Part shown: in pieces, positions 21,801 through 55,400 of the stretch
Position numbering within the stretch: the first letter of the stretch is position 1
How the letters are laid out: each line of letters opens with the position of its first letter
From: Sphaerodactylus townsendi
Taxonomy: Eukaryota
Assembly: GCF_021028975.2 (NCBI RefSeq)
Contig: NC_059433.1
Location: 40,238,001 to 40,302,000 of the forward strand
Length of the DNA: 64,000 nucleotides
Direction: 5' to 3'
The notes under the pieces: model-generated
The model's input: the letters and a program-made list of their open reading frames with translations, nothing else
What the model was told of the DNA's origin: nothing
The model's database searches: none
Translations under genes and position numbers: made by a program

Positions 21801-24800
21801 GTGTTAAGAGAAAATGTTCAGGTATTCACATGTGTTGTTGATCCCTAGTGTATCTGGCTTTGAATTAGAAGTTTAGGCCACTAAACACTGGTGTGCAGAC
21901 CGTGGGGCTTATAGGAGTTTTCAAATCTTTTGACCAGTTTTACAAAAAAACTTTGCTGTTTACTATCAGTATCTATTAGAAAATTACATATCTTAGATAA
22001 CAGATTCTTTCCATTACTAATTTTTCAAAACTTGTCAATTGGGTTCTTATTTTATCTTTACATAATAATGCCTGTAAGAGACTTTTTAAACTTGTAGATA
22101 CTGAAACCAATTTATCTGAAACCCATTATTTAAGAGTTCTGCAAAGATAACAAATGTTCACCCATTAGGAATTAAGGATTTATAATCAGACACTTTCAGA
22201 TCTTCCCACATTTTAACATTTTCTTCTTTTGCAGCTTAGCTAAAGTCTGATCACAGAGGCCAATGGTGAAATTCCAGGAGATAATTTTGGTCTAACCTTC
22301 ATCCAGTTATTTTCTAAGGCACTACCAACAAAATTATCCATAGCATAATAACTATATTTATTTATTTTATTCAACCAGATTCAGACAAATTAACACAAAG
22401 GATTGCTCAACTACAGTCAATGTTGTATCCTTATCTACTTTTATCATTTTGTTATCCAACCTATTCTAGTCAAATACTTTTAAACACTGGGAATTCCCAA
22501 GCCCCCTCTTTTGATCTTAATTACAGTATCTTGAAATTTTATCCTAAGTGTCTATATGATTCCAGATACAGTTAGATAAGCATTTATACATATACATTCT
22601 AATTCTTATATCATTACTGGAACATTCCAACACAGTAAATTCAGTATAGGCAGTACTGACATTTTAATTAAATTTCTCTTACCTGGCAATGTCAGTTTTA
22701 ATTGTCACCAGATGGATAATAATTTTTTAATTTCCTTCATGACTCCCTACCAGCCAAGTGTACCTACTATCATTTGCAGACATGAATGTTTTTACCATTA
22801 CAAATCAGAACAATTTGTACTATGGCACACTGAAATTATGGGATATTCTTCATATTATATGACAACTGATTATATCTTCAAGTGTATGTCTAGTGGACAA
22901 CTGAAGCTCATTCTCGTTCTATGATGAGTAAACCTACAAGTGACTACTTTTTCCTACTCATACATCATATTATTTGTTGCATAAAATAGATCTAAAACAC
23001 ACCTGCTTCTGTTGAGATTCCCTGGATGTTGAATCTCAGAATTACAGTTCAAACCTGCTATGCATCAGATAGCACTATATGCAGGCATACCTGTGAGAGG
23101 GAAACTTTTCTTTCAGAGCAGAAACAATTAAGTTTTCCACAAAGTGATCTGTTTCTGTCACAAGATCTGCTGCAGTAGTTTTGGTGGACACTTGTTTTTC
23201 CTCAGTGAAAGCTTTCCTAATAACCTAGATGGGGAAAAAACACAAACATGGTTTTCAAAGTTCTGCCCATAAACTCACAAATCAAGTGAACACAAAACAC
23301 TCGACTCAAATCATCCAACAAACAATATATGGTACTACAAAATAAGAAGTCTCAGGTTAGGGACTCTAACAGCAGTGGCATATAGGTTAAGAGCTCGTGT
23401 ATCTAATCTGGAGGAACCGGGTTTGATTCCCAGCTCTGCCATCTGAGCTGTGGAGGCTTATCTGGGGAATTCAGACTAGCCTGTACACTCCCACACACGC
23501 CAGCTGGGTGACCTTGGGCCAGTCACAGCTTCTCGGAGCTCTCTCAGCCCCACCTACCTCACAGGGTGTTTGTTGTGAGGGGGGAAGGGCAAGGAGATTG
23601 TAAGCCCCTTTGAGTCTCCTGCAGGAGAGAAAGGGGGGATATAAATCCAAACTCCTCCTCCTCTTCCTCTTCTAATCTATGCTGGCACAAAAGTTCTGAA
23701 GTGATATCTTGTTAGTGTGGATAAGACAGAAAAGGTACACTAGAAGCAAATCATTTGTGTAGATACATAGCACCTGGGTAGATTTTCAACCTAAGCACTG
23801 TTTTTGCCACCTCTTGTGTTTAATTACTAAACACTGTACTAAATTTATTATCATGATATTATGTATCAGCATTGGGTCCTTTATGTAATGGCAACAAATA
23901 TGAGTCAATATAAACCTCATCTCAGGTTTCAGCTTCATACAAAACAATTATTAAATGAATGAATTTACTTCCTCAATACACTGTGGTTTGCCCTTAAGTG
24001 TGAGGTTACATAAAACATTTGCTACATTTTGGCAAGAACAATAGCTGATAAGGAGCTATTTGAAGACAGAGGAAGTGTCAGTGAAACAAAAATAACCAAG
24101 CAGCCCCATCCACCCTCATACTGCTAAAATAGCTTTCTTCCAATCTTTTTCATTCAGCTTGTGAAGAACTAGAGAGACATGTAAACAAAAAAACACAATT
24201 TAACGTACCCAGATAATGCCCATAAGGATAGAGGTAGAAAACATATAAATGAACACAGTGTAAAGAATGTATAAACAAGGAAGGAAAAGTGCCCCTTATG
24301 TCACAGTATCAACAGTCCCTAAAATAAATGATCCAGCTCCATAGCATCTCTCCAACAATGTACAGCATGATCCTATGAATGTTTACTGGAAACACAGTTC
24401 AGTGGGTCTTGCATTCAAACAGCTGTGCATAGGACTGCTGATTTCCTTGGTAGCAATCCTTACTGAACTCATCGGAATATTCTTCTAAATGAATGCATGT
24501 AGTAGGATTGTGCTATGCATTACCCAAGCACATCAGCAGATTAGACCCACAGGCCACCGCCAGCTGCTGTACCACATGTTTATTTTAATGAATGGTTAAA
24601 AATAGGAGGAAAAAAGTGCCTGAAACAAACACAAAGTGTTGCCTGATTGCTACCCTTTCAGAACAATGGTAGCAGCTCATTGGAGATTTTCCAGCAGCAA
24701 ACAGCTGCTGCGTAAATTAGTGACAGAAAGTAAAACTAACAAGGGAAGTTAGTTGGCCTCTCACCTGTGTTCTATATTAGGCTGCCCCACCAATCAGATT

Positions 24801-26075
24801 TGTATCTAGTATATTGCATTATACTTTCTCTTCTATATATCTTGCCAGACAAGAATATTTCAGACCCCAAATAACCGTGAGTCATGTTTACATAAAGGGA
24901 AATGCCACATCAGATAATAAGGCAATTTCATACACCTGTAAATTTGGAACACGCTACTCAGTTGTGAAATGATGAAATATTCCAAATGGTCAGTTTGTGG
25001 AGGCTTCTTATATTAATGTAGTTCCATTTACTTGCAAGCAAACTACACCCACAGTAGTGCTGAAAGAGCTTCAGAAATGCCACTAACCAGAAATTAATTT
25101 CTCCTCAATATGCTCCAACTTACCTAAAATTATACATGGCTGTTACTGAAAATAATATGTCTTGACTGCTTAAACTGGATCATTCAAAGTTGGCAGAGGG
25201 GAAAACAAAAAAGGTACACAACCTAAGCTACTACTGAACTGAGAAAAATCTTGACATTCAACATACTGAAAAGCAGTGTTTCCTTTGCCACATCACATAA
25301 TGTCCAGTCAAAAATAACAGGCCGCACTCGCAAAACAATGGGCAACATTTTATCAGTGTTCATACACTCCTCTTGTGATGTTTTAGATCATTTTCCTGTG
25401 GGTTACTTTTTAAATCAGGTACTGAGAGGTTATTTTCATGATCTCCAGACATACAAGGCAGCTTGTGTTTACTGTTTCATCTGACCTGACTTCACCCAGT
25501 CTTTCAATCCAAGCCTTCACCTTCTCTGGGTTCATACCTGAACATTATTTCACCCCCTGATTCTTTTTTCCTCCTCATCCCTTCGAAAGAAATACACAAA
25601 CTGCATGCTAATGCTTGCAAGTGCAACTTTGAATGAAATGCTGCTTGTTTCCGAGTAAACTTGCACAGACCAAGGCTTGACAAACTGGCCAATGCAACGT
25701 GCCAAACTTTGAAAAAGGTTTGACCTAAGAACTATACACGACCCAAGCTTTGGGCTCTTTGTTGTCAGCTCTGCAGCAGCTGCCAGAGAGCTCCCACCCT
25801 TTCCCTCTCCACAAGCACCCGGTTCCACACAACAGCGCGCGCAAACCTTTTCTGCAAAGCCCCAGAAAGAGGCAAAAACCTCGCATAGGAAGGCAAAGGG
25901 CGGCTCCCGCCAAGAACCCACCAGCCGCGAGGCTTGCGGGGAGAGGACGTCAACGTGGCCGACTCACCTGCCCCGCCCGCAGTGCCAACTGCACCGCCAC
26001 CTCCACGCACTCCTTCCAGGGGTCGTCCCCTGTGGCCGCCGCCGCCGCTGTTCTCTGCTCCCCGCTGGGCTTCAT
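15758..26075 (-). CDS. IMPA2: Inositol monophosphatase 2, complete 8-exon CDS, 292 aa
   Basis: Exons: 26075-25968, 23224-23091, 21745-21641, 20608-20563, 18688-18580, 17889-17781, 16593-16442, 15873-15758. All introns are GT-AG, phases are consistent and the total is 879 nt. Motifs [14 protein letters not shown] and [15 protein letters not shown] are present. It ends ...[11 protein letters not shown]. Confidence 0.97.
16442..16593 (-). CDS. IMPA2: IMPA2 exon 7
   Basis: [50 protein letters not shown], 152 bp. Confidence 0.96.
16928..17564 (+). mobile_element. Solo LTR (probably Gypsy-type) in IMPA2 intron 6
   Basis: TGT...ACA termini, perfect 5-bp TSD TGTGT (16923-16927 and 17565-17569), internal GATAAAAG TATA-like and AGTAAA poly(A)-like motifs. 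Confidence 0.65.
17781..17889 (-). CDS. IMPA2: IMPA2 exon 6
   Basis: [37 protein letters not shown], 109 bp. Confidence 0.96.
18580..18688 (-). CDS. IMPA2: IMPA2 exon 5
   Basis: [36 protein letters not shown], 109 bp. Confidence 0.96.
20563..20608 (-). CDS. IMPA2: IMPA2 exon 4
   Basis: [15 protein letters not shown], 46 bp. Confidence 0.95.
21641..21745 (-). CDS. IMPA2: IMPA2 exon 3
   Basis: [34 protein letters not shown], 105 bp. Confidence 0.96.
23091..23224 (-). CDS. IMPA2: IMPA2 exon 2
   Basis: [45 protein letters not shown], 134 bp, AG/GT bounded. Confidence 0.96.
23371..23672 (+). mobile_element. tRNA-derived squamate SINE (Squam3-like), young copy
   Basis: A/B-box head (GTGGCATATAGG, GGTTTGATTCC) and a (CTC/CTT)n tail. 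Highly similar to the copy at 28252-28543. Confidence 0.8.
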
Positions 26076-31335: not shown

Positions 31336-31571
31336 TAAATAAATTAAATTATTATACAAATAATGAATGTATAGCAGCTTTTAAATCCCAATTCATTTTG
31401 TTGTGAGGAAGCACTAGCAGCTTTCTAGAGAATTTATGTTAGTAGACATGATCTCAGAAAGGCCTATGGTTATCTGCCATCGATTCAATTATCTCTAAAA
31501 CCGAGTATGCATATGTCTTTGTTACGATTTCTAAGCCCATGTGGTTGACATGTCATAGCCAATTCAACGCT

Positions 31572-31585
31572 GTTTCCACGGGAAC
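31572..31585. promoter_or_regulatory. RFX X-box (GTTTCCACGGGAAC)
   Basis: One mismatch to GTTNCCATGGNAAC. Sits at the 5' edge of a CpG-enriched region (31.55-32.2 kb) just upstream of the candidate first exon. Confidence 0.55.
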
Positions 31586-31796
31586 GCTTTAGCACAAATC
31601 CAGAGGGGGAACCTCAAACAGCCGTCCCTTCCGCGTTTGTCATACACGGTGATTGCCTGTGCAAATGCTTTCTGAAGTATCATTAGGCAGAAAATAATCC
31701 TTTTTCTCCCGAGTTCTGACTGCCTCCACTGATCCTATTCTCCATGTGATAAAATCATTGTGAGACCTGACAGGCGCTGTACGAGCCTACCCGTTT

Positions 31797-34700
31797 ATGG
31801 GGGCTTTCTCTACATCGTCGTCTGCATTTCCAGCCGTTGAGGACCAGAACGCTAGACTTTGGCCCGGATGTCCCACCAGCCAGCTCGCGCACCGCCTATT
31901 CTGCGATTTGATTGGCTGTAGCGGTCTGAGGGAGGGCGTGAGGGCAGGCCCTCGCCCTGCCCTCCAAACCGGCTTCCTGTGCCATGTGGAAAAGGGAGGG
32001 GGTGACTCTGCCCTCCATTCACAGGTGCACCCAAGTGAGTGGAAGGGGGCAGGTCCCGGAAGGGAGGGAAGTCCCAAGCGCCCCTCCCCGTCCGCCAAGA
32101 CGCATCAGGCTAGTTTCAAGTCGGTGGCAAGCGAGGAAATCCTTGGATTTGCCTTGTTACCTGGGCGCCTCCAGGACTCTTAGAAACGCCACCCCCTCAC
32201 AGAGAGTCCAAGAAGATCTGTCCACATTTACAGTGCCAGATGTACATTTCAGAAATAGAATGGGGAAGAGAGATCACCTGATAGTTTATGTTTGGTTTGG
32301 TTTATTAGATTTGTATACCGCCCTACCCCCGAAGGGCTCAAATTATGTGTCTGGAACTGGTCAAATCGACAGAGATAGGATGCCGCCGCCACCACCTCCA
32401 CAGTACTGCGGGGATCATAGCTCAGAGGTAGAGCACTTGCATGCAGAAGGTCCCTGGAGCATCCCCCCCCCCCCCCGCATCTCCTGTTAAAAGGATCTAG
32501 TAATAAGTGATGTGAAAGACCTCTGCTGACATTCTGGAAAACTGCTGCCTATCAAAATAGACAGTAGTGGCTTTGAGGGACTTAGTTTAGGTAGCTTCAT
32601 TTTTTTTCTTGGGAAAAAGTGGTTTCTGTGCTGAATGTCATGCATATGTACATATGCTCTGTAAGGGAACACAGGCAGTGTCCCTAAGGGAAAGTGCACA
32701 TTGTCCACTTGTGCATTCGATTATATATGTCTACTGAAATCTACCCATTGCCTGCTAGAGAAAGAACTGAAGTAAGATCCATACAGTACTTTCTATGCAC
32801 TTGCTAGTTAACAAAACATTTTAAAATGGATTCATTTGCAGTGCAACCCAATTCACTGGTACCATTCCTTTATCCCCCATGAGGGCTCAAAGCAGTTTAC
32901 ATTAATCTCCTCTCTTCCATTTCATTCTCACAACAACCCTGTGAGGTAGGTTTGGCTGAGGACTGTGGGACTGGGTCAAGGTGAGCTTTCATGGGAGAGT
33001 GGAGATTCAAGCCTGGGTCTCCCAGATCCTAGTCCAGCACTGTAAACACTACACCACACAGGCTCTCTGTGCAACACTATGCAGAGTTGTTTCATGCTAT
33101 GCTCATTGAAATAAGTGAAGTAACTATCTTAGAGTTAATCTGTGCAGGCTTATCTGAGAGTAAGTCACACTGAATATAGCAGGCCTTATTTGGGAGTAAA
33201 ATTCTGGGTAAGCAGACTTGCATTTGTCTAATCTAGTGATTTCAGTTGACATTTGTGCAACAACCTGGGTGCTGTAAGATAGGTAGCTGTGGCTGGGTCA
33301 GTGTATAAATTTCAGTCTTTCATGGGGCAATCCAAAATAAATGTGTTATCAGCCACTTATTGGCCCCCATAACACTATCATAATCCTTGTGTGAATATGA
33401 TGGATAAGACCCTTTTCTCCAAGTAAAGACACAATCTCATGGCTTTACAGGGGCATGTTTCTTAACTATGTTGTTAATACAGTGTTTTGCCACTGGGAAC
33501 TATGGAACACTTATGTATTTATGCAGATGGAAATAATTTTGTGCCTCTTATTAGTAGGGTCAATGATCAATGTCCCCTAAAGCATGTATCATCATTCCAC
33601 TGCAGGAAATTGTCTAACTCTTCAATTGACAAACGGCTGCTATATCTGATAATACGATTACATGAGAATACCAGAATCCAAGTGAGATATAGTTGTGAAG
33701 GTCACTTGTCAAACACAGAAAGGTGTGAGATGGGTGTATCCTTGCTCCTTCCCTTTTTAATATTTATGTTGACTTCCTAATAAAGCGGCTTCAAAATGTA
33801 GACATTCATGCACCAAAACTATACAATAAAAAACTAGCATTGTTGATGTATGCAGATGATGCTGTGATTTTATCACAGACAAAAACAGGGCTGAAACGAG
33901 CTCTGGAAATTCTGAAGGGGGATTGTTGCGAGGAGCATCTAATTATCAATTATAATAAAACAAAGATAATTCATTTCAATAACAGATTTAGGAGATCCTC
34001 TCGGCAAATTGATAAACATAAAATTGAGCAGAGTTTCAAATATCTAGGAGTAATTTTCCAATATAATGGTGGACAAATGGCTCATATCCAAGCAGTTATT
34101 AATGCTGCTAAGAAAAGCTCTGCAGCCATACTTAAGATTCTTTCATACCAAAGGTGGGAATTTTATTCCAGCAGCACTTAGACTATTTATGGCCAAGTAA
34201 ACACTCTCATGACTTTACAGGGGCATGTTTCTTAACTATGTTGTTAATACAGTGTTTTGCCCGGAAAACCCACCAGAACCACAAATCACAATTAACCTAT
34301 GAAGCCCAGCTCCATACTCCCTTTGCGGGTAGAGCGGTTAAGAAATTGACTTAACAACAACAACAACAACAACTGGGTCCCTATAACAATACTGCCATGC
34401 TGGAATGGGTACAATCAAGCTTTTAAAGAGCTCTTTTCAATGCTCCTAACTGCATATAAAATGTGAAAAGTCAAAAGAGATCGCTATGAGAAAGTTAAGT
34501 TTGTAAAATGTTTTTCATTAAAGCAAGAACTTATTTCAAGAATGGAAACAGATGCAGTAAGAATTTTCAATTGTATCAGATCACCCTAACCTACACCTGT
34601 TTTCCTCCTTTTACTTCTTCAGTTTAATCAGGAAAATGAACAGTTGCGCAAGAACCTGAGGCACATATACCTAAAAAACAAGCAGTTGGAATATGAGTTG

Positions 34701-37700
34701 GCACAGATGCAAGAGCAGCTGCATGCACAAAATCAGTTCACGCCTATTTGCGTTACAAAGAGAAAGTAAGAAATGGACAATCTATGTTCCTTGAGTGTCT
34801 CAGTTTCCAGTCCGGGTTCTCATTCTGGCTATCACTCTGAGTGCTGTTTTAACAACCTTGTTAGCATCCCAGCTAAGCAGCACTGAATCCAAGCTGACTT
34901 AACGTTACTGTCAAATCAGTATTCTTCACAATTTACACTCTTGTTTTTGGAAGAAAGGAAACATGAGTTGACTGTTTCAATAATTTTTGATATGTTAACA
35001 ATGTTGTGAATGTTAACACTTGTACAGACTGTTAACTCCATTTGCCTTGAAGAACTTAGAAGAGTATACAGGATCAGAGCATATGGCGATCTGTAATTTG
35101 AATGTGTTCCATTTTTTATGAGATTAATATTTAACATATCATAATCAGCTGTAAAGTGGGCAGCATTGTCTTAAAGGCATAATCATTTTCTGTAAGTTGT
35201 GAATTTTTATAGCTAATCACAAGGCCACCAAGACGGGGAGAATAGGGATACAGAAAGTTTTGGGGCCTATTTAAGTTGGGACATGTGGAACTTGGCAAGA
35301 TACTGGTGGGATAGTAGCAAGATTCCTGTTCTACTTTGGAGGGAAAACAATGTTAGAACTACAAAAATGTGATCAAATTTAGATGATATCCTAATGGATG
35401 TAAATGTATTTTTGATTAACCTTTGGTAGTGGAATTCCAGTTGCAAATGTTAAGATTAAAAGGTCCAGTAAACAAATGTACAGCTTTTCAGTTAACAGAA
35501 TTACATTATTAAGTCACAGTGTTTATTTGATTTAGTGTTCAAATTCAAACAGAAATCCATTCATTGGACACAGTTCATGCCAGGCATCGTGAAGTAGCAA
35601 AGGAAAATTCAAGGTAATCTTTTTCAATGACAATATGTTTGTTACTTATTTAGTGAGATATACTCCTACATATGTGAGCATAATGATGATGGTCTTAACA
35701 GTGCAATTGGCGAAGGCAGCGGCTTACTCGTGAGTAGGACACCTCGCAGAGTGCAATGCAAACAAGAACCGAAAGACACAGTCACCGTGCAGTTCTGTTT
35801 ATTTGCTAACTACCGTCAAAGTGCTCCGCCAGACCACAGGTGTTTCCAGGCTCTTTTCACTCTGTAGTCTGTGCCAACTATATACAATTGAGGTGCCAAT
35901 CCGGTGCCCATGTCTTATCAGACTTTGCACACGGTACACAGTTATGCACACAGCCCTAATATGCACACGGCACTTACTGGAGGGAGTGTCCACCTGTCAT
36001 CTAGATTTTGCCATCTAAACACATGTTCTGACAGCAATCCTAAGCAGAGTTGTACCTACGTTGTCAAATGTCAACCCCCCCTTCAGTTTTATACAGTGAT
36101 GCTGCTTTTAGTCAAACGCAGTTCTTCGCGTAGCTCTTATTGCTGCTGCAACCAGACAGGAAAATCCACACAGCAGTTTTCCTCACAGTTCTCTTATGTC
36201 ATAACCCCCATAACCACCCTATCTCCCAGCAGATGAGTGCCTTTAAAAAAGAAAGAAAGCCCAGAGTAGATTGTGGCAGTAGATCAACGGCATAATACTA
36301 AAATTCCAGATTTTTTCAAGGCGTGAAAAAGGCCATCTGGTGTTGGCTGGAATGGCTGAATGTGTAAGGAAAGTATTGCAAGGAAAGTAGTGTCAATATG
36401 GGTGGAGCCTTAAAAATGCACACTTTTCTGTCTACGCAGCATCCAAAGGAAGTTTGAGGTGTCTTTACTCCAGCTCTTCTTAGGTCTGCAAAACTGGGCA
36501 TGATGACCTCTCCTGTCTGTCTTTCTCTTGTTTCGGCTCTCCTTTTTTTTTCTTTCTAGTGCAGGAGCAGATGCCAACCAATTAACAGAGTTGCAGCCTC
36601 TGTGTATATACCTGTCAGGACTATAATCCTGTGATCTCCATTATCTCCAGAGACATCTGATCTCAGCATCACCTGAAAGGCTGCTAGCATGTCAAAGGCC
36701 GTTTGGGGCCTGCTGCAGTTTCTCTGCCTCTTGTTGAAGTTGCTCTGGATCTTCTTATTATTTTGCCACATTTGTCCTCCCAAGCCATTCGCGCTGTCCC
36801 TACAGAAGCCTTGTCATGCACATCCTGCATTTCACCTTTTCTTTAAGGAAGGAACTCAAACAATAGCATTGAAAGGTAGTGAGTAAAAGACCCAGAGCCG
36901 TTTATTTATACAACTTCATTTGCTTTCAGCTGGGTTTGTATAGGCCGTTTTGTTTTGTGTATATGTGTATGTTTAAAACATCTGTGATTCCTTCTTATTT
37001 TGCATGTTTTGGTTTCTAGATTGCGTCAGTTGTACAATAATCTCCTGAGGAAGCATAATAAAGAAATAAAAGCAAATCAAGAACACAGTGAAACAATTGC
37101 AGTACTTTCTGTAAGATTTATGTCACTTCAAAGTATATGCTAAATAAGGCTGCATCGACACAGTGCGCATTCTTTGTTTTGCATTCCTTGCTGCTGTGAA
37201 TGCTGAGGCATGTGCATCAGAAATGGAGCATCCAGACAGGAATTTTCTGTGTACTTTCATCTGTATGTGGCCATTTTCCCTGCACCAGTGGGCTTTTTGA
37301 AGGGACTTTTTAACCATTAAAAAAAGACTTCTGGTGGTGTGGCAAAGAAAATGGACGTTGTGAGCAACTCAGGGAAGAAAAATAGAAGAAAAATGAATAG
37401 CAGCTTTGGGAATGCACACCTTTCCATCCAGACAGTGTGATAGCACTATTCGACTGCCTTCTTCCCAAAAAGATTGGAACAAAGCAGAGAGTGCTCTCAG
37501 GTCCAGAAAAGGACAACTAGAGCATATTGTATAGAAGATGCTTTCCTTCCAAATCACTACAGGGAAAGGTCTCCATATGGAGACAGCCAAAGAGTGTCCA
37601 AGATCTGCTAGAGCCTTTGAGACCTGATCTGGTGTAGTGATTAAAGTGTTGGACTTGATTTAGGGCAGTGGTTCTCAATCTTCCCAATGCCGCGACCCTT

Positions 37701-40700
37701 TAATACAGTTCCTCATGTTGTGGTGACCCCCAACCCTAACATTTATCCATTTTACAGATGGAGAGCACTGATGCAGAGAGACTTAGGTGACCCCTGTGAA
37801 AGGGTCGTTCGACCCCCAAAGGGGTCCCGACCCCCAGGTTGAGAACCACTGATTTAGGGAGACCTGGATTGAAATCTCCACTCATCATGCAACTCATGGG
37901 TAACCTTGGACCTTGTTGCTGCCTTTGCCTCAACCTCCCACAGTTGTGAAGTTAAATGGAGGATGGAAGAAAATCATGTTCATCACTCTGAGCTCCTTAG
38001 AGGAAGGGCAGATAAAAATATACTAAAGAAATTAAAAGATATTGCACATGTTGAGTAACCATAAGGAATTCCATGAGTGAGTGATAGACAATTGGGATTC
38101 CTTCCCCCAGAATGAGATTGCTGAATTCTAAGGCTATATGAGTAGCCTCCTGCTTACCTGGCCTTCCCAAGCTGCTATATTGGAGTGCCCTATAACGCTG
38201 GCTGCTGAGGTTCATGGTTTAGGGAGAAGGAAGATACTTATCCAGCCATGAATGTGAGTAGTATAGTGTATGACCGTGATGACCTTTCCTTGTTTCATTC
38301 TTTGTTTTTCCCTTGTTTGCCTCCATCCCCATGCCGTGTGGAACTTTAGGTACAGTTGGGTTTGAGGGGCATGCATCTCCATTTGAGAATATTTAACTTG
38401 GTTAGGGAGCTCAGCTTCCTTCACAGATGGAAAGAGTCTTCTTGGGATGGGGGGGTGGGTGGGTGGCGCTGGCTGAATTCCAAAGAGTCTCTTTTCCTGT
38501 GGTCCTGGTAACTCCTCTTTCCCCAACACTCACTAGTGTGTGACTCATTTGAGACATTTACAGCATCTTGGACTCAGGAGGCAGGGATTAGGAGTGAGAG
38601 ATGCTTGCCTCTTGATGCATACCTTGATGCCCACCAAGGCTAGGAGCTCAAGCAGGGAAGGACCCTTCCCCTTTCATTTCCTTTTCTGGCTTCATCAACT
38701 GTCCTCAACTTTCCACAGCTGCTGGAGGTTGGTGAGGATGCGTGGGTCCCAAAGAGCTGTTTTTTCCCCTCCTTTCTTATTTTACAAGAAAAAAACCCAG
38801 AATGTTTCAGGAGTTCTGAGTTTGAAAGAACTTGTATCTCATCTTGCCCTCCTGATAGGTTTAGGACCACCAAGTTTGATGCTGAGCAAGTAGCTGCTCG
38901 TGTGTGCAAAGTTACAGCAACATCCTATGCAAGGCAGATGAGCTTTCCCCTTGCGTTGTCTGTCAGTTGCAGTTACTTTACTACTGTGACATATTATATG
39001 GTACATTTCTTTGTACTATCACCAGCACTAAGATCTACTGAGAATGGTCCTATTTTGTTTTGTTTTTAAACAGTTCTAGCCTACTTTTCTTCACTCATGT
39101 TCTCTAAACTATATCATCTGCCTGTGCTCCTCATTGGTGAGAAAAGTGGGCTATAACTGAATACATAAATGCTAAATAAATAAAGAGTAGGTGCCTTGCA
39201 ACTGTATAGTTTCCATCTCCAATGCATTAGTCAGAGTCCATCCCAAACCCTGAATCAATGAGGTCTAAAACGTTTGATTAGCATTTAACAGAATTTGGAA
39301 AGTACGGGATAACTTCCTTGGCTCTTATGTATTTCAGATGCATTCCATATATATAAAATACACTAGCTTTGTGGTATGTGTCTTGCTCACCATAGCTGTC
39401 CTATAGGGCAGGCCCTCCCTGAGCTCAGCCCCAATACCTCTGCTCACTGGTGGCTCCCAACAGACTCTTCAGTCTTGACAGAGAGCTAGATGGGTAGCAA
39501 GAGCAGTACTTTAGTTAAACACCCAGTCATCCAAAGGAGACAATTTTTGCCCTCTGTTAGTACTTGAGAAGGGTAGAGTAGAAATTGAATTAGCAAGTGC
39601 TTACAGAAACAGACCTCTGCAAACAGATCCCCTTTGGGATCTGTTCCATGAGTGCCTGGGATCCTGCATCTTTGAAAAGGTCATGCATCTTTGGCTATGC
39701 ATTTAGTGCCATTGCTGGATTGGGGCTGAATGTGTTCCTGCTGAACTGTTTATTGGTATTGCCTTGTCCATCAGCTTTGCTTAACTGTGGATCAATTCCT
39801 TCTTTATTTACTTTTGTAGTAGATCACAGGATTGGGGTTTTAAGAACTCAGATAGAAGCTGGGTATCATGAAATATGTGACTGTAGAAAGACTGAGTCTT
39901 TCTAAAAGTCCTTTTCTTTATCTCAGCTGTGGATATCTTGATCTAGGTCAGATTCTGCTCTTTTATCTTGTTTTTGTTGCCTATTATTAGTAAACAAAGA
40001 AGTCTCCCTGAATTAATTTACCAAGTATGCTTGTAGGTAGGCTTGAGGTGGCAAGTATTTGTCATGTTTTAAATATGTTCTACTGTTTTACCACAGGTTA
40101 AAGTGAATGAGGTGCAACATCAACTTCAGTTGGCAAGGCAAAAGATTAGGGTGTTAGAAAGCAAAAAGGTTTCACAAAAGGGCAAAACTGTTCCAGGCGA
40201 TTCTTCAGCTCGGAGAAGAATGTCATCTCACAAATGTATTTGCAAAAAGAAGGGGGGTTGTTCCTGCAGATATTTAGGTAAGAATATTGGATTACCTGAT
40301 GGTTTTTTGTCACATCCTATTCCAGAAGAAGTATGACTGTGGATTGTGGTAGATTCATTTTCTATCTGTAGATAGACTTACAAAGCACTTTAATTCTGGA
40401 GGTAGGGAATTACTCTGATTTCTGGAACGGAATGGAGTTTGGTTTGTAGGGCCTTTATGGCCGATTATGTGCAATGTGCTCACTGCACAATGGGGGCGAA
40501 TGTACGTCGCAGCAAGGTTTCTTGTACAGACCTGTTTCCTGGAGCCCCACTTTCACTTTCCATTCTCTCCGCGGCAAGCGAGGCCACTTTTAGCACAACT
40601 TTTTATTTGCTTTGCCGCCAGGGCAGACAGATTTGCCAGTGAGCATAGCTTTGCCCAGACATCTTCCCTCTGCCCACAGCAAGCCTGCCCACTCCCTCAA

Positions 40701-43040
40701 GCTGTTTTGCATGCCTTTCCCCTCCCCAGATGCAGCTGACTCCTTCTAGCTTCTCTACGTGTACATATCAAGAGATTGGTATCTAGATATAATAACAACA
40801 GAGGGCCTTTGCAAGGAATAGTACAAGCAGGGCGTCTTTTTGGCTCCACCCCACCTCTCCCATTTTACTTCCGCCCTTCCCGAAGATTGGGAGGACTTTT
40901 AAAACTTTATTTCAGACAAGGCTCTGTTTTAAAACAAGGCTTTTTCTTCCTCTTCTCAATCTGTTACTATAAATTGCTCTTAGCCGCTACTGATGGAGGT
41001 TTGCATTGTAGCTAAAGCCAACCTTCTGTGCTTGGTAGGTGGACCAGAGCTGTACACCCCAGCTCTTCATGTCATATAACACTATCTCCCTCCCACTTCC
41101 CTGATCTTTTTTGTACTCTGAAATCCATGTGCTGCTTGTATCAATATTTGCAGTTCAAAGACTTCCATGGCTTTTATATACCCCTTCCTACAGCTATACT
41201 TTCCTACCAGTGTAGTGATCCTTAAGGCTGATGATATGAAGTGCTTTGAACAGCAGAGTGAAGTTATAAGCAGTCAACAAAACGGTACTTGGCTAAACAG
41301 CATCCAGGGTATGTGGGTTTCCAGCTAATAGGACTTCATACTAGCAACTCTTTCTCTGAATAGAATTTTGTAAGAAACAACTAATTTCAGTTTTGCCTAG
41401 AAGTATAATCTGAAAATTAAGGAGATGTATCATGACTATGCTTTTGAGTGATCTTTTGGTGTTAAAAATATATTTAAATTGTAGACCAGTTGCTTTTGGA
41501 GATCCAGCATTTGAAGAAGGAAAATGAAAAGCTGTCTGGAGAGAGAAGAATGCTGAGAAATGAACTTGCTGCATTAGACAAGGTGATTTGTTTGCATGTT
41601 AGGACCATGACTTAAGTGTATCAGCTATGTATGAATAATTCTGCTGTCACAGTTCTCTTGAACCCAAAGTTTCAGTTTATGCATGCACTGTTCCAGTATA
41701 TGTGGCTGTGAGGACTAACATAGGCCCTTTCCCCACTTACCTTAAGCCCCGCGCTACTCTCCTCAAGTAGCGCGGGGTCCAGCTGCCCTCCCCACTTCAG
41801 GGGCGGCGAGAATGCAGCCGCCCCGACGCTGCCTCTCTCCCGCCCCCTCGACGCGCGTAATTCCTGGTGCCTTTTGAAATGGCGCCTTTTGACGACCCCG
41901 TGCAGAGCGCGGGGTCGTGGGGAAGCCAGGGCACGCGCTGGGAATTGCGCGCGCTGGGAATTGCCCGCAGCAACCTTCGGGCAAAGGTGAGTGGGGAAAG
42001 GGCCATAGTTCATCATTGGGGGGGCGTGTATTTAGGTATGTCCTTCCTCTTCAAAATGTGGTCAGAACTATCCACTTAGAACTGGATGTGTTGGCCAATA
42101 GCTGGGGAGGGTTATGCATGCCTGGCAAGGCCTATACATCTTTTTGTTGCATTCAGAATAGACAACCTGTGTTGTCTTTGGAGAACTCCCTATCAAGTCT
42201 CTTTGCTTGAGAGGTTCATCTTTTAGGTTTAAGGATTCTGGGTTGGGTCCAAATAGTTTTGTACTGGCGGAAAGGAAGGAGGACATTCCCTTTGACCACC
42301 AAAAGGCTATTCTAAGGATCACGGGACAAAAGTCATGTAGGATAGGGCCTGTCATAAATAGGGAATTAGATGAGAATGAATGAAAAAAGATGGCTGCATT
42401 CACCCCACCCCACCCATAAATACCTCTATCTGTAGAAAGTATGTGAAGAGATGATGTTTCACATTCAATGTCTTTATTTTGGAGTCATGGCAAATGTTAC
42501 TTTGACTGAGCTTTCCTTGTTTATTCAGCTGAAATAAGCAACAACATATTTCCTGTAAAGTCTTCATTGCCACAGAAATTCATTTGGCAGGAACAGAAGC
42601 CTTTTCAGTTTTACAAAGTATAAGTAGGGTTTGGCCATGATGCCTCTCTGCTTTTCCAAATATCTGATATATTGCAACAGATGAGAATATTAAGAAGGGG
42701 ATCAGGAGAATATCCTAAATTACCGGTACATGGAAGTTAAATAGAATATGGGAGCCTTGTGAAAGTTTCTACTGCTTTCATTAGCAAATCTTTTGGTTTT
42801 TAGATTCCTCCCCCAAAAATGTTGAGTAGTAACTTAGAAAATCTTAGATGTTTTATCCAACTGGGAAGTGCTTTTTAATTAAAACATATGACCTGGTCTT
42901 CTTTTCAGGATTTTTTCGATGAAATAAAAGATTTAAAATATAATCTTCGAGAATCCTTAAAACTGAACAATCACTATGAGAAGTGCTTGAAACTATGTTC
43001 AACATATGGAATAAATTTTGCACCAGTTTTTTCCAAGTAG
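31797..43040 (+). CDS. Uncharacterised coiled-coil protein with a CEP290-like C-terminus (about 381 aa; 5' exons tentative)
   Basis: Firm phase-consistent GT-AG exons: 34524(or 34478)-34556, 34623-34765, 35536-35613, 37020-37110, 40097-40277, 41485-41582, 42909-43040 (TAG). Tentative upstream exons: 31797-32034 and 32666-32771. The joined total using 34478 is 1146 nt with no internal stop. The protein is heptad-rich and ends ELAALDKDFFDEIKDLKYNLRESLKLNNHYEKCLK..., similar to CEP290 ELENFDPSFFEEIEDLKYNYKEEVKKN. Confidence 0.8.
32410..32600 (+). mobile_element. tRNA-Ala-derived SINE (Squam2-like), diverged
   Basis: TAGCTCAGAGGTAGAGC...GCATGCAGAAGGTCCC head followed by the GTGATGTGAAAGACCTCTG body. 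Confidence 0.6.
33492..34192 (+). mobile_element. Degenerate non-LTR retrotransposon RT fragment
   Basis: LMYADDAVILSQT...INYNKTKII...FKYLGV, with stops and frameshifts upstream. Flanked by a direct repeat of about 70 bp. Confidence 0.8.
34623..34765 (+). CDS. CEP290-like gene internal exon (FNQENEQLRKNLRHIYLKNKQLEYELAQMQEQLHAQNQFTPICVTKR)
   Basis: Strong pyrimidine tract plus CAG acceptor, donor AA|GTAAGA, coiled-coil composition. Confidence 0.85.
35536..35613 (+). CDS. CEP290-like gene internal exon (VQIQTEIHSLDTVHARHREVAKENS)
   Basis: 78 bp phase 2-2 exon, TTTAG acceptor, AG|GTAATC donor. Confidence 0.75.
37020..37110 (+). CDS. CEP290-like gene internal exon (LRQLYNNLLRKHNKEIKANQEHSETIAVLS)
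   Basis: TTTCTAG acceptor, TCT|GTAAGA donor, phase 2-0. Confidence 0.82.
37666..37851. mobile_element. SPIN (Space Invaders, URR1-like) non-autonomous hAT MITE nested in a SINE
   Basis: CAGTGGTTCTCAA TIRs, internal GCGACCCTTTAATACAGTTCCTCATGTTGTGGTGACCCCCAACC, perfect 8-bp TSD ATTTAGGG. Confidence 0.85.
40097..40277 (+). CDS. CEP290-like gene internal exon (VKVNEVQHQLQLARQKIRVLESKK...HKCICKKKGGCSCRYL)
   Basis: CCACAG acceptor, G|GTAAGA donor, phase 0-1. Overlaps ORF-track entry 40103-40336. Confidence 0.85.
41485..41582 (+). CDS. CEP290-like gene penultimate exon (DQLLLEIQHLKKENEKLSGERRMLRNELAALDK)
   Basis: Phase 1-0, AAG|GTGATT donor, clear heptads. Confidence 0.85.
41723..42004. mobile_element. 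Harbinger/PIF-type MITE in the last intron of the CEP290-like gene
   Basis: 21-bp TIR GGCCCTTTCCCCACT(T/C)ACCTT, 3-bp TSD ATA. Confidence 0.8.
42909..43040 (+). CDS. CEP290-like gene terminal exon (DFFDEIKDLKYNLRESLKLNNHYEKCLKLCSTYGINFAPVFSK*)
   Basis: TTCTTTTCAG acceptor, TAG stop, AATAAA at 43133-43138. Confidence 0.88.
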   Translation, partial: DFFDEIKDLKYNLRESLKLNNHYEKCLKLCSTYGINFAPVFSK

Positions 43041-43132
43041 CAGTCACCCCAGAAGTTTATAGAAATGAAATGCCCATAGAAGATTATTGACAATGTGTTT
43101 AATATCTTGACTATTCATAAAATATATTTATG

Positions 43133-43138
43133 AATAAA
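43133..43138 (+). terminator. Poly(A) signal of the CEP290-like gene
   Basis: AATAAA about 90 nt after the stop, followed by a GT/T-rich tract (GTCTGTTTTTGTG). Confidence 0.7.
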
Positions 43139-43491: not shown

Positions 43492-43996
43492 GGCCGTTTC
43501 CGCACGAATGCGGAAGCAGCCAGGTCGGCGTTTCTGACTCCGACCCGACGACACTGGGACCGTCCACACGGACAGTCCTGGAAAGAGCCGGGCAGCCGGC
43601 GCCACGGAGCACTGGCGCCCGGCTGACCCGGCATGTCCCCGGGCCTCCGGCGCGTCGCTGAGGCCTGGGGACACGCCCCCCTGGCCCTGCGCTCCTGTTC
43701 CAGCGGCGCAGGGCAGGGGGGCGTGTCCCCAGGCCTCAGCGACGCGCCGGAGGCCCGGGGACAAGGTAAGTACCGGGTGGGGGAGGCGTCTCGAAGCCGC
43801 TGCCGTTCGATCGGCAGCAGCTTTGAGGCGGCGTTTCCGCAACAAGAGCGCTTCCGAGCGCTCTGGGGAAACGCCGGCTTCGCGGCGGTAGGGCGGCACG
43901 GCTGCGATGCAGCTGTACCCCCTGTGCGAATGGAGGCCTGGAGACAGCGTTTTTGCCGTCTCCAGGCCGCCATTAAATGCCCATGCGGAAACGGCC
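43492..43996. mobile_element. GC-rich Harbinger/PIF-type MITE with an internal palindrome
   Basis: TIR GGCCGTTTCCGCA / TGCGGAAACGGCC, 3-bp TSD TGA. Confidence 0.8.
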
Positions 43997-49184: not shown

Positions 49185-49459
49185 ATGGCATTTCCACGCT
49201 TTAGCATTGTGAGCAAGCTCTTTTTGAGGAAAAGAGTCTCACTTACCCTGAAACTGTTATGTGTTATTCTCTCTGTCCTTGTCTTCTGTGAATTTTTAAT
49301 TTATTACATAGTTATAATTCAGTGTCACTGGCCACAAGTCAAAACTGAGACTCCAGAGGGCAGTGAACAGACTTCAGCCTCTGTCTTGAAGGTTGTGTTT
49401 TTATCTGATACTCACTTGCTTGGTGAAATCCAAGGACATTGGTTGGACAAGCTAAGGAG
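49185..49459 (+). CDS. MPPE1: MPPE1 first coding exon
   Basis: MAFPRF...FCEFLIYY...[20 protein letters not shown]. Acceptor at 49092, donor AG|GTAAGA. Confidence 0.93.
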
Positions 49460-52400
49460 GTAAGAACTAACTGTAAATAACCTTTTTAAAGGGATTAATA
49501 GATATTTTTAGTACAGTTGGCACATACTGTTAGTTGAAGGTCCAAAAATGTTAAAGTTGTGATCCAGTTTAAGAGTTGATTGGCCTCAGCTCATCATTTT
49601 ACAAAGGGTGTGTAGTCATGCCCTAGACATAGATGCCCTTTTTTAAAGAAGGAGGAGGTAATATACAGTCCATCACTCAAGCTTCCAAAACCCTGGTCTG
49701 TATACCGTCACTTGCTAAAGTGAGTCATGTGGCAAGCAGGGATGGAACATCTCTTGATGTGGAATAGAACAACTTCATAGAAATGGGCGGAGTCAATCCC
49801 TCTATCCTTCTACACTCACATAAAGCTGAAATTCTGGGCACATTTGGGAAGTAAGCTCCATTGGACTCATTGAGTAAATGAGCCTACAATCAGGCTGTGC
49901 GCCCCCATGTCTGATATCTGGGTTTTCAGCAACTTGTTTGAGAATATGCCTAATGTGATGGTGGAAAGTGTGGTTTCATAGTTGGCTCCGCCTCTTATGG
50001 CAGTCATATTAGGGCTAGCTCTGTTTCTTCGAGCAGCCATTTTGTGGTTGTCCCCTCTCTTTTGGCAGCCATTTTGTCAGTGGTGGGATTCAGCAGGTTC
50101 ACACCACTTTTGCAGAACTGGTTGTTGAAATGGTGCTTGTAAGCAATCAGTTGTTAAATTATTTGAATCCCACCACCAGAACTGGTTACATTTTTTGAAC
50201 CCCATCACTGCATTTTGTGCTTGTGCGCATCACCCTGTGATGCGCACAAATGTGCCCACAGGACCCCAAATGTGGCCACAGGATCAAAAACATTGGGGAC
50301 CACTGAACTAGAGAAACTGGAAGTGATCGTGGCTAGAAATGTTGGTTCTGATATGCTTTCACCCAATACTTGCAGGAAATTTTTAACAGGTGCACATTCA
50401 AAAATGGCATCCACCGCCAGCAATAGTACAGTCTGCTTTGCCACCTTATTTCTGTTGCTTGAGTAGCCTAGGACATCAATTGCAAGCTTTGTGTAGCTCA
50501 GAACTCCAGAACCAAACTAACATAACTGAAAATTTTGAAGGGTGATAGTTGGACATTTCTGCTGATAGTCTGTGCTGATATTTTCTGTGTTGATATTCAT
50601 GCTATTGTTTGTCTAGTTCTGATGGGTTTTTGGGGGGTGGGGGTGGATTGCACCCTGAGACATTTGTTGAAGTAAGATGCACACAAAAAGTATTCCCTAA
50701 GTTTATCAGAGTGGAAAACTGGTTTTTTCCACATCTGCGTATCCCCTTTCCTTTTCATGCAAATCTGGACAAGTTTTTGTGATATTAATTGGAAGATATT
50801 AGACTGGCTCTTTTTTTTTCTCCTCTTAGAGAATGGCAAATGGAAAGAGCCTTCCAAACTGCCCTATGGCTGCTGCAACCGGAAGTTGTTTTTATTTTAG
50901 GTGATATCTTTGATGAAGGGAAATGGAGTTCTTCTCAGGTCAGTATTGTGTGCAGTGCTATTCTTGAAGAAAAATAGGGTTATATTGAAATAATTGTACA
51001 CACAAGCACAGAATTGTGGAATAAATACATTGCTTTGATGTTGTCTTCATTTCATGGTCATGTTTACTAACCAGTAGCTTAATCCATAATCTAGTTAAGC
51101 AAAAGTACTTGGAAATCATTGGGTTACACTTGCAATGTATTCTGGCATTTCACTGTAACAAGATAGTGTATAAGAATCTTTTGTGTGCTAAAATCCAGAT
51201 TGATGTTTGAAAGAAAAGGTGGGTTAAACTAGGATATACTGTGTAATCTAGATACAGGCTGAACCAAGTCATGCAACATCCTCTAGCATAAAGTTGCTGA
51301 AAACCATCCAATCATGACTTAAAAGTTAAACTGTGATCCTTTTCTTACACAATCCTTTGTCGCTGTTGGTATCAGATCAATTAATGGACCAAGTAGGAAA
51401 TTACTGCTTGATTATTTTTTAAAATATAGTGCTGCATTTTGTCCAATGTTAGTGAGATTCTGGTGCTTGAAAAATATTTTTAGGGACGCATGAAAGGTTT
51501 TGCATTCCTCTGTGGTTGTTTGCATGTGCTTAGCTTAAAATGTATAATTGTGGACATCTCTCACAGAAAGTTGGTCAGAGTGCCTGCATTCTGAAATGTG
51601 TCTACCATGTTAATTGAAATATTAATACTGTGTTTTAACCAGGTTAGGGCGTGAGAGCATTGGTAGCTGAGAACTGGGACAAATAGCAATTTCTGACAAT
51701 AAAGAAAAGATTTGAGTAGCCTCTTAAGTAGCATTATTCAACAACGGAAGCCTTATATATTTTCTGCAGGCCTGGTCAGATGATGTAAGACGCTTTCAGA
51801 ACATGTTTAGGCATCCAGCCCACATTGAGCTAATTGTGATTGTTGGCAACCATGACATCGGCTTTCATTATGAGTGAGTATTTGGTGAAACAGGATATAG
51901 TACCATGGTGGGATATGTCAGAATGAGAACAATAACTGCCTTCTATAAGAATTCAAGCCTTTGATTTTATGGTAAGGTAGAACTTTCATTTTAACTGTAT
52001 AATCTGTGTCTGCATGGGAGAAGATCGCTCTGAAAAACTGAACATGACTGTGATGACCACACTCTTTTTCTTTTGTGAATGAATATGTATAAAAGATACT
52101 ATTTATAAAATATAAAAATATATAATACTGTTTATTTCTTCTTTTCTTTCCAAGGTATTTATAACTTCCACCAGGAATTTAATTCCAACCCCTTTTTAAT
52201 TTCTCCTAAAGTATTGTGTCTGAGCTCTAAAACAGTTTCAAAGGTCTATGTGACCCTGACAAAGAAACCTTCCTAAGTTATTGGTGTAAGATTCCAGGTT
52301 AATTTGAACAAATTAAAATTCTAGTTATATGTTTTCTTCAGTTTAATGGTCACAAGAAGTAATTTATCTTATCTCTACAATCAGTGAAATTATTTGAGGC

Positions 52401-55400
52401 AATAACTACATTGTTCCTGTGGATCTCCAGGTCTTCAGGAGCAGCTTTTCTGGCGGCTTAGAGAGTTTCTGAGGATGGATCCATTCCATCAGTGGTGCTT
52501 CAATTGCAGTTCTTCTGACTCCGCGTATGTGCCCCCAAGAGAGAGTTGCTGGAAAATCACAAAAGCCTTCTGTGATGGACAGCTAACTGCAGATCAGTGA
52601 TATCTGTCTGAGAACACTGATTGACAGAGGATTAAAAAAAACCTCTACAGTTGACTTGTGAGAGTTCAATTGACATTGCTGGTTAGGAAGGAAAATGCGG
52701 AAAGTAGAGAGGATTGAAGAGGATAGGATCCTGCAATAGGGAAGTGGAGCTAGTAGTCTTTCCCTGAGGGAAATAGCTTCTAGAAATTGGTGGTGGATGG
52801 GAGAATCCCTATCAAGTGCTAAAGAAGGAAAATTGGAACCTGTGTGTATGATCTTGCCTCCATACTTCAGAAATTTTGTGTCGAATAAATTTGTTCGTGT
52901 TTAAGCAGCGACAACCAAGCGCTCTCTTTCCAGTTACAAACACTTGCGTGTAGAACAAAACCACTACATTTTTGTGACAAACTATTGTATATAGTTGTAC
53001 CAATTTCCCCTAATTTCTGTTACCTTTTCACCTCTCAAGTTTAAACCTGAAACTTTCCCTAACAGCCTGCCTTGACCATTTCTATGTAAGAGTAAAATAA
53101 AATAGTTTATGTATTGTGAATTTATATCAGCCTCAAGCGTGCTGTATTCAGATATATACCAATAAACGGTTTTCAGTTCTTTCACATCCTTGGGTCAGTC
53201 AGAATATATATTTATCCATCTTAACATCTGGGGGAACAGACAAAAGAAAAAAGGAGCAGATTGGCAAAGTAAAAAGGGGAGGGGAGAAGCATCATAGCCA
53301 CATATTTCATTAATCAAATCTCACTTATGACAAGTGTTTTAGTAACGTTACTGGGGGAAATAATACACTTAACTGCCATTTAAATAATATATCTGTCATG
53401 TGCTAGCTATTTATCAGCCAATATTTCAGTAGAAATGCTTAGAACGAATTCTAAGTCAAATGCATCATACGCTTTATTTTTTTTCACACAGAATGACTGC
53501 GTTCAAGTTAAAGCGCTTTTCACAAGTTTTCAACTTCACCTCAGAAAAGCTGGTAACTCGGAAAGGGATAAAGTGAGTGATTTAAAAAAAAGTTTTAATA
53601 TTTATTTACCCTTCATATCCTTATGCTGCCAAGGAGTGATGATGAATTAAAATAATGAATAACGAACAGATTTCTTTACCTAAGCTATCTTGCTGTATCC
53701 TTGTGAGTTTTTGTTTTGTTTTGTTTAAGGCAAGCCTTTTACCCAGATTAAAGCGACTTCTCATATTGGCTAATACATGTGGTAATTTGTTGTGAACTTT
53801 AAAATGAAGAGAATACAAAGCTGTTGTGTATTGTGTGTCAATCTTCATTACATTCATGTGCTCATGTAAGTGGGAATGAGTTCTACTAAATACAGTGGAA
53901 GTAAGAGTGAAACTAGGGAGGATGTCGGGAGTACAATGTTCAGAGCTCAGGCATTGTTTGTTTCTAAATAGCAGAGGAGTCCCCAATTTTAGATCTGCAG
54001 AATTAAGGTAAAGTTTAACTGTTTTCTCCATGCCATTTTTTTCAGTTGAAACAGCAAACGTGCAGCATTCTATATTCCAGGTGTTGAGTTTTGGATATGC
54101 TGTTCTGAGGAACCCCCAATGAATATAATCCTATTAAAATTACCAGCATACCTGCGTGTTTAGGAGTTATCAGAATGGGTTGGGCAGTGTTCTCTGTATT
54201 ATTTGTAATGGTTAAAAGATGTTCAAATGGTTGCAGTTTACTTGCTGTTTCCTACATCCTTTTATTCATAAACAAGTGGATAGTGTTTATGATCCCGAGG
54301 ATTCTTTGTATGAACTCTTCTATAGGTATGTGTGCCCGAAAGGATGTTCTCCAGCTCTTTCCTTGTTGAGTAGACCAACTGCATTTTAAAGTTCTACAGT
54401 ATATTAAGCCATGCAAATGTATACAGGTGGAAATACTACAATACTACAGTCTTTTGTGTTGTGTGCAGGGGATAAATAATGACATTTGATTGAGAGGCTA
54501 CCATCTCAGTTGGTTGGAAACGATATCAAAGGGTTGGCAAGTGCATGTTTAGGTGTATACACACACCATATAACACTCATCGGTCGTTGCCTGAAGACCC
54601 TCCATGTGGGAAGCTGTTTTTCAAAAGGAGAGTGACTTTGGTATTCTTTTCCTACTGAATTCACCCGGGGTGACTCCCACTTGATGTGGATTATCCTTCC
54701 TTGTTTCTGAGAAATACTTGAGTAGACAGATACAATACAGGGAGGTAGGGCTGGGGCTGCATTGCTGCAGTGGGATGAGAGACAACAGGGAAGAGATTTT
54801 GATCATACTCATGGTTACCAATTCCTGTTTATAGATAAATGCAAGGAGGTAGATTGCTACTTCTCTGAACTTTGCAAGACAACCAAGTTTACTGGACTGG
54901 ATGCAGTTCTGAATCTGATAAAAGCTCTGTGCCCATCCCACAAATCCATTGGATGTCAAATGTAATTTCCCCTCCTCCTCTACAATTCCTTTCAGTTTTG
55001 TCCTGGTGAACAGTGTCGCAATGGAGGGAGACGGATGCAAAATCTGCAGGACGGCAGAGGCAAAACTTGTGGAGCTCTCTCACAGACTGAACTGCTCATT
55101 GCAGGTAAGAAGACATTCATCGTTAAGAAACTCTGACAATGTAAAGCATCCCTTAACCATGTCTCTAGTTTGTGCCTTTTCCTGTTAACAATTTTGTTTT
55201 CTTAATTCTGAAGCTGCTTCAGTGTGCAGACAAAGAGCCCCATCCAGGGAGGGTCCCCGAATCCACTGGTGGAAGTGCCATGCAGATTTACCTTCCCCAG
55301 GGCACTTACTCTGGCAGAGTGGTGAAATTGCCAGAGTGTGGCCGCTCTGGCCCTCTCCGGTGCTGAGATGTGGTGCCAGATGCAGCACCAGCATTCGCTG

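Follow-up and report, generated by a model that had tools for sequence, protein, structure and literature searches.

Between the genes IMPA2 and MPPE1 of Sphaerodactylus townsendi, in a window of 64,000 nucleotides (contig NC_059433.1, positions 40,238,001 to 40,302,000, forward strand), a sequence-only reading had placed an intact gene for a short coiled-coil protein, ending in a motif like the C-terminus of CEP290. The question raised by this locus is which gene this is, how much of the proposed model stands, and whether its product has anything to do with CEP290. The gene is the S. townsendi orthologue of an ancient single-copy animal family labelled 'centrosomal protein of 290 kDa-like', and both it and its label were already known, being present in RefSeq. 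Both neighbours were found in the window, in the expected places. The explanation given here, as far as the identity of the gene and the predicted architecture of its product are concerned, is considered highly probable; the proposed mechanism carries a much lower confidence of its own, as stated where it is discussed.

Identity, gene model and descent

The seven coding exons of the gecko gene were placed on the forward strand by tblastn with orthologous proteins. Translated in frame, they are identical at 254 of 254 residues to RefSeq XP_048364490.1 ('centrosomal protein of 290 kDa-like', Sphaerodactylus townsendi; public protein P0045), with a length of 257 residues in both. The annotated locus (L010; GCA_021028975.2, CM037622.2) is base-for-base equal to positions 21984–53040 of the window, its gene span corresponding to 31984–43040. 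As both the RefSeq protein and the gene span match the window model, the finding is that of an already annotated gene, and the automated 'CEP290-like' label that had been anticipated is indeed the one carried by XP_048364490.1.

Exon 1 (31984–32034) opens with the ATG, reads MWKREGVTLPSIHRCTQ, ends at the donor GTGAGT and carries the family N-terminus 'M..P.[IV]H.C'; it equals the start of XP_048364490.1 and of the annotated gene. Exon 2 (34623–34765), which ends in phase 2, encodes the first long predicted helix and is 57–73% identical to squamate orthologues. It is followed by exon 3 (35536–35613), the 'VQTE' exon, and by exon 4 (37020–37110; LRQLYNNLLRKHNKEIKANQEHSETIAVLS), which is one of those with the highest conservation. 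Exon 5 (40097–40277) encodes the end of the second predicted helix, then a basic, Cys-rich linker HKCICKKKGGCSCRYL with a low predicted local distance difference test score (pLDDT), and ends in phase 1. Exon 6 (41485–41582; QLLLEIQHLKKENEKLSGERRMLRNELAALDK) shows the lowest ratio of non-synonymous to synonymous substitution (dN/dS, 0.12–0.16) of all exons. The tail module is encoded by exon 7 (42909–43040; DFFDEIKDLKYNL), which retains the invariant F, E, D, K, N and Y and includes the TAG stop codon (43038–43040); the AATAAA polyadenylation signal (43133–43138) lies 93 nucleotides past the stop.

Splice sites are canonical throughout (AG acceptors on exons 2–7, GT donors on exons 1–6), the end phases of exons 1–6 are 0, 2, 2, 0, 1 and 0, and the frame is open over 257 codons. 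Exons 2–7 each match orthologous proteins exon by exon; the exons were queried singly in these searches, frame continuity across the junctions being checked by script only. The earlier claim of a stop-free GT-AG exon chain on the forward strand is therefore borne out, with intact AG and GT sites and an open frame, and its stop codon and AATAAA were exact to the nucleotide. A moderately CpG-rich stretch around exon 1 (31400–32200; GC up to 0.61, CpG observed/expected about 0.7) is presumably the promoter region.

Transcript evidence comes from a 907-nucleotide Logan contig (L007; SRR12657022) in which exon 2 and exons 4–7 are contiguous at the same junctions as in the window model, and which is thus a spliced messenger RNA (mRNA). 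Exon 3 is a cassette exon in the annotations of other species: isoforms that leave out exactly its equivalent are annotated in Pogona, Candoia, the whale shark and the basking shark, and a paddlefish isoform does without it relative to the sturgeon protein. The frame survives such skipping because the exon is 78 nucleotides long and has phase 2 at both ends. Two of the 12 residues that are invariant in the family nevertheless lie in this skippable exon, namely a Q and a T that do not vary in 46 sequences.

With the Pogona orthologue (P0004) as the query, 51 relatives were retrieved, XP_048364490.1 among them at an expect value (E) of 5.7e-80, and a 15-sequence profile gave 152 matches, 120 of which were listed; it is on these 120, proteins only, that the statements on taxa made here rest. 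The family is found in squamates, turtles, crocodilians, many birds, caecilians, the coelacanth, lungfish, sturgeon, paddlefish, sharks and rays and, outside the vertebrates, in amphioxus, hemichordates, echinoderms, molluscs, one brachiopod, one annelid, nemerteans and one coral. The lengths of its proteins cluster at 240–280 residues, and the gecko protein aligns from end to end with those of amphioxus (34% identity, E 2e-40) and of the coral (28%, E 6e-31). The 120 listed of the 152 matches include no protein from a mammal, teleost, frog, salamander, insect or nematode, which is absence of evidence only; to that extent, the absence from humans assumed at the outset agrees with what was found.

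A maximum-likelihood tree built from 44 members agrees with the species tree, with monophyletic vertebrates branching into chondrichthyans, sturgeon, sarcopterygian fishes, caecilians, turtles plus archosaurs, and squamates, among which the geckos are the first to branch. The seven-exon boundaries are the same in starfish and acorn worm, and those seen in limpet, amphioxus, vulture and gecko agree with them. Such a history fits single-copy vertical descent, and on these comparisons the family has been conserved since before the cnidarian–bilaterian split, so that the idea of a gene retained in reptiles has to give way to that of a single-copy gene spanning cnidarians to sauropsids. Some Logan fragments whose tail reads 'TTTTP…RRRKR' are similar to the coral protein and not to a fish protein.

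The gene is intact and under purifying selection, as had been proposed. Nei–Gojobori counts per exon, summed, gave dN/dS values of 0.38–0.39 for the window gene against three other geckos (Fisher p 1.4e-5 to 1.8e-4), 0.29–0.34 among those three, and 0.18–0.25 against a bird and the skink-like mRNA. In the alignment of 46 sequences, on which conserved columns were defined, none of the 12 invariant residues (Q and T of VQTE; one E in exon 4; in the tail E, L, D, F, E, D, K, N and Y) has changed in the window protein, which also agrees with the family at 32 of the 39 columns conserved at 90% or more. A pseudogene was considered and rejected. The gene can be described as intact but somewhat fast-evolving in this lineage.

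Other readings of the same exons must be weighed at this point. The sequence-only reading had started translation at an ATG at 31797 and passed through an exon at 34478/34524–34556, for a product of about 381 residues. This model can draw on the AG and GT sites of the 33-nucleotide exon, which keeps the frame in the window, on the conservation among geckos of the surrounding 60 nucleotides and on an annotated 360-residue form with an N-terminal extension in Heteronotia. However, the ATG at 31797 is in another frame than the conserved exon-1 peptide (…LPSIHRC.Q), the frame of exon 1 is closed by stops upstream of 31984, and the exon at 34524–34556 is present neither in the RefSeq coding sequence nor in any homologue examined, none of which has an insert between 'HRC.Q' and 'LNQEN'; its GT donor is lost in two of four geckos (Heteronotia and Eublepharis). 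The clash of frames, the upstream stops and the unsupported exon leave the 381-residue product without support against a RefSeq protein of 257 residues, and the longer model is hardly credible. Six of the seven exons that had been called firm stand exactly (34623–43040, phases 2, 2, 0, 1, 0 as listed), and only 34524–34556 falls. It is also improbable that the exons belong to the MPPE1 transcription unit, as alternative or read-through exons at its upstream end, rather than forming an independent gene, although two passerine records (P0062, P0087) are filed as 'metallophosphoesterase 1 isoform X3/X4', a sturgeon record (P0008) is a true fusion of the family protein with MPPE1, and a CpG island lies only about 0.3–0.9 kb past the AATAAA of the gene. 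Both a stop codon and an AATAAA belong to the gene itself, the passerine 'isoforms' contain no MPPE1 residues at all, consisting only of the CEP290-like protein and an N-terminal extension, RefSeq models the gene apart from MPPE1 in the S. townsendi genome, and the limpet, starfish and acorn worm genes have no Metallophos neighbour within their 10-kb flanks. Finally, a gecko-lineage copy that is losing its function under relaxed constraint, with its frame still open, would account for the seven altered columns among the 39 (3–4 in other geckos), for the substitutions in the tail core (E to K, A to N, Q to R), for deletions of one and three residues, and for the dN/dS of 0.38, to be compared with 0.29–0.34 among the other geckos. 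Set against intact splice sites, an open frame, 12 unchanged invariant residues and a dN significantly below dS, this decay is judged very unlikely, and the reading of a separate, intact gene of 257 codons is kept.

Predicted architecture and the relation to CEP290

An AlphaFold2 prediction for XP_048364490.1, obtained with the 46-sequence alignment, has a mean pLDDT of 82.5, with helices mostly above 90. Three long alpha-helices are predicted (residues 12–56, 76–148 and 178–246), all with heptad-like hydrophobic spacing; their mutual arrangement is undefined because the predicted template modelling score is 0.36. Of the two flexible, low-confidence linkers, that at residues 57–75 includes VQTE with its invariant Q and T, and that at residues 149–177 is basic, with a C-x-C…C-x-C pattern in sauropsids. 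The FFDEIKDLKY module lies within the third predicted helix without a break, and conservation is highest in exons 4, 6 and 7. Pfam returns sub-threshold generic coiled-coil matches only. A Cys-rich basic motif, HKCxCKKKGxCSCxYL (residues 164–180; exon 5, about 40220–40277), is conserved in squamates and has a looser version in turtles and crocodilians; it falls within the low-confidence linker.

CEP290 (NPHP6) is a ciliary transition-zone protein of about 2,480 residues. Its last 55 or so residues presumably carry an ...ELxxFDxxFFEEIEDLKY... module, and the human tail, which presumably reads …FFEEIEDLKY…, may be similar to the family colinearly further upstream as well; this putative similarity serves as a lead only. 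The 17 identities in 35 positions counted in the sequence-only reading are arithmetically correct for the two strings supplied, of which the human one is provisional. A further lead is given by names: of the 120 family members listed, about 66 are named after CEP290, by NCBI, UniProt and bird-genome annotation and in many phyla, and one of the 120 after another coiled-coil protein, a consistency that random coiled-coil similarity would not be expected to give.

With these premises, it is tentatively proposed that the protein is a small coiled-coil adaptor that would act at the centrosome or ciliary base via a C-terminal surface of the CEP290-tail type. The C-terminal helix with its ...ELxxLDKxFFxEIxDLKY...KLN..YE... 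pattern, the most conserved part of the protein, may be a surface for protein binding, similar in kind to the extreme C-terminus of CEP290, and it is from this likeness that action at the centrosome or ciliary base would follow. The partner found there would be shared with the CEP290 tail, or would consist of it, and the VQTE cassette exon would tune its binding.

Several observations weigh against this proposal. The homology with the CEP290 tail is putative, its basis being annotation names and the presumed sequence of the human tail. When the last exon of the gecko gene (43 residues) was searched against 1.84 billion representatives, no genuine CEP290 was found at E of 1e-3 or less; the 22 proteins within this limit are all short family members or fragments, except for a tunicate protein of 2,551 residues. 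The Pfam model of CEP290, CEP209_CC5, matches neither the exons nor XP_048364490.1 nor five orthologues (Pfam has no model for the CEP290 tail or for the family), and in the ESM Atlas the tail has generic coiled-coil clusters as neighbours, with chance-level scores. Mammals and teleosts, whose cilia are normal, have no family member among the listed matches, so that the family could not be a core ciliary component. The expression evidence is a contig from another lizard, its nearest relative being the skink Tiliqua, rather than S. townsendi reads. Moreover, the gecko protein departs from the family at 7 of the 39 conserved columns, the second most of the 46 sequences, with three of these departures in the core motif of the tail itself. 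Other searches were equally silent on CEP290: that started from the tail region of the 2,551-residue tunicate protein returned tunicate paralogues only, a metagenome scan with family-specific patterns returned family members only, and a profile search of the PDB, which contains no CEP290, returned generic coiled coils only.

These results bear on two further readings. The 'CEP290-like' label may be a naming artefact of coiled-coil similarity, given to a small conserved protein with no specific relation to CEP290 or to cilia. The failure of the last exon to retrieve CEP290 at E of 1e-3 or less, the weak and generic coiled-coil character of the Pfam matches and of the Atlas neighbours, and the family's absence from the listed matches for ciliated lineages such as mammals and teleosts all speak for it; on the other side, it is CEP290, and not myosins or golgins, to which the names consistently refer in different phyla and pipelines, and the invariant core FFxEIEDLKY, which presumably recurs in the human CEP290 tail, is aromatic-rich, a composition that is atypical for heptad repeats. 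Such an artefact is regarded as unlikely. A bolder idea, to which the sequence-only reading also inclined, is that the family would be a free-standing counterpart of the CEP290 C-terminus, docking where the CEP290 tail docks (at the ciliary base or centriolar satellites) as its partner or competitor, with VQTE as a switch. The family would then perhaps be colinear with the last 250–330 residues of CEP290, and might be an ancient duplicate of the 3' part of the CEP290 gene or the donor of that part. This idea is speculative and considered unlikely. If it were true, research on cilia in model organisms would have missed the family entirely, because no mammal, teleost, frog, fly or worm is among the matches listed. 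The more limited adaptor proposal is retained as the tentative mechanism.

Literature searches by name and by motif string gave no paper on the family, in agreement with the earlier statement that no functional description was known. The gene itself adds nothing to what RefSeq holds, which is the same model under the same label. The interest lies instead in the family, with its animal-wide single-copy descent, its frozen seven-exon structure, its cassette exon, which annotations show in species ranging from sharks to squamates, and its head-to-head pairing with an inositol monophosphatase gene since the chordate ancestor, and in the fact that it did not appear among the listed matches in those lineages that supply nearly all of cilia and centrosome biology. 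These family-level facts are modestly interesting as they are, and would be more so if the homology with the CEP290 tail were true: the family would then offer a small, tractable handle on the binding partners of the extreme CEP290 C-terminus.

Neighbouring genes and other features of the window

IMPA2, the divergent neighbour (16395–26075, reverse strand), corresponds to the Inositol_P gene of the annotated locus; its exon-bearing segments were found at 16395–16691, 17780–17917, 21640–21771 and 23078–23224, and its start-codon exon ends at 26075. MPPE1, the Metallophos gene of the annotated locus, follows downstream in tandem (49185–57667, forward strand), with its coding sequence starting at 49185 and further exon-bearing segments at 50789–50974, 51728–51874, 56235–56399 and 57449–57667. 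In the Paroedura locus, all three genes occur in the order of the window, namely Inositol_P (reverse), the family gene (forward) and Metallophos (forward). A Metallophos gene is also downstream in Heteronotia, Eublepharis and a vulture, and an Inositol_P gene is upstream of the family gene in the bamboo shark. In amphioxus (Branchiostoma belcheri, L005, 5269–10001), the family gene stands head to head with an inositol monophosphatase gene, 379 bp apart, an arrangement that suggests a bidirectional promoter, kept at a wider spacing of 6–9 kb in sharks and geckos. From the neighbours seen in the gecko, bird, shark and amphioxus loci, the pairing with inositol monophosphatase is chordate-wide and the link with MPPE1 at least gnathostome-wide; in the 10-kb flanks of the limpet, starfish and acorn worm genes, inositol monophosphatase, like Metallophos, was not found. 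The passerine and sturgeon records mentioned above, for their part, point either to read-through transcription or to annotation pipelines that merged the loci.

Other features of the region were also noted. In intron 1, a stretch of about 60 nucleotides upstream of exon 2 (34500–34560) is better conserved than its flanks in four geckos; it contains the 33-nucleotide 'exon' 34524–34556 and an ATG in good context, with the GT donor present in two of the four, and may serve as a splicing-regulatory element or as a micro-exon restricted to certain lineages. The same intron contains a reverse-transcriptase fragment of the long interspersed nuclear element type (33729–34178, forward strand; Pfam RVT_1, E 2.5e-15), flanked at about 33.4–33.6 kb and 34.1–34.35 kb by similar short peptide stretches that suggest repeated pieces of an element. 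Between the AATAAA of the gene and MPPE1, a CpG island at 43.4–44.0 kb (GC up to 0.77) harbours a 53-nucleotide inverted repeat (43634–43686 and 43711–43763), 98% complementary with a 24-nucleotide spacer, and a second CpG-rich block is found at 44.6–45.2 kb. An Rfam search of window positions 26–50 kb found nothing.

Comparison with known proteins

XP_048364490.1, an automated prediction without functional annotation, shows no difference from the window gene. Examples of orthologues in other animals are those of Heteronotia binoei (P0034), Paroedura picta (P0039), Pogona vitticeps (LOC110078905, P0004), Chiloscyllium plagiosum (P0015), Branchiostoma belcheri (P0128), Lottia gigantea (LOTGIDRAFT_231712, P0016) and Montipora foliosa (P0173). 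Like the gecko protein, they have about 240–280 residues, seven coding exons, three conserved helical blocks, VQTE and the C-terminal FFxEIEDLKY module. Unlike theirs, the tail core of the window protein shows K, N and R where E, A and Q are near-invariant, and its C-terminal end is shorter; an upstream ATG, which sets it apart from the wider family, is a trait common to other geckos.

A different setting of the tail module is found in the tunicate Clavelina lepadiformis, where uncharacterised proteins of 1,720–2,710 residues (P0003, P0184–P0187) match the C-terminal module of the family, with 37–39% identity over 62–76 residues to a shark family member. Unlike the family, the protein P0003 (2,551 residues) carries the module three times, about 270 residues apart, in a repetitive coiled-coil protein, for which no Pfam CEP209_CC5 match was found. 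These long sequences may be either real proteins or merged tandem genes.

As for CEP290 itself, its C-terminal part has been proposed to carry a microtubule-binding domain, and the C-terminally tagged protein marks the centre of the transition zone (PMC7793253). The gecko protein, with 257 residues, is a tenth of the size of CEP290, has no CEP209_CC5 and leaves no room for the membrane-binding or microtubule-binding regions of the larger protein, and it is encoded by a separate single-copy gene at another locus. The family may possibly be a paralogue of the CEP290 tail, and not an orthologue of CEP290.

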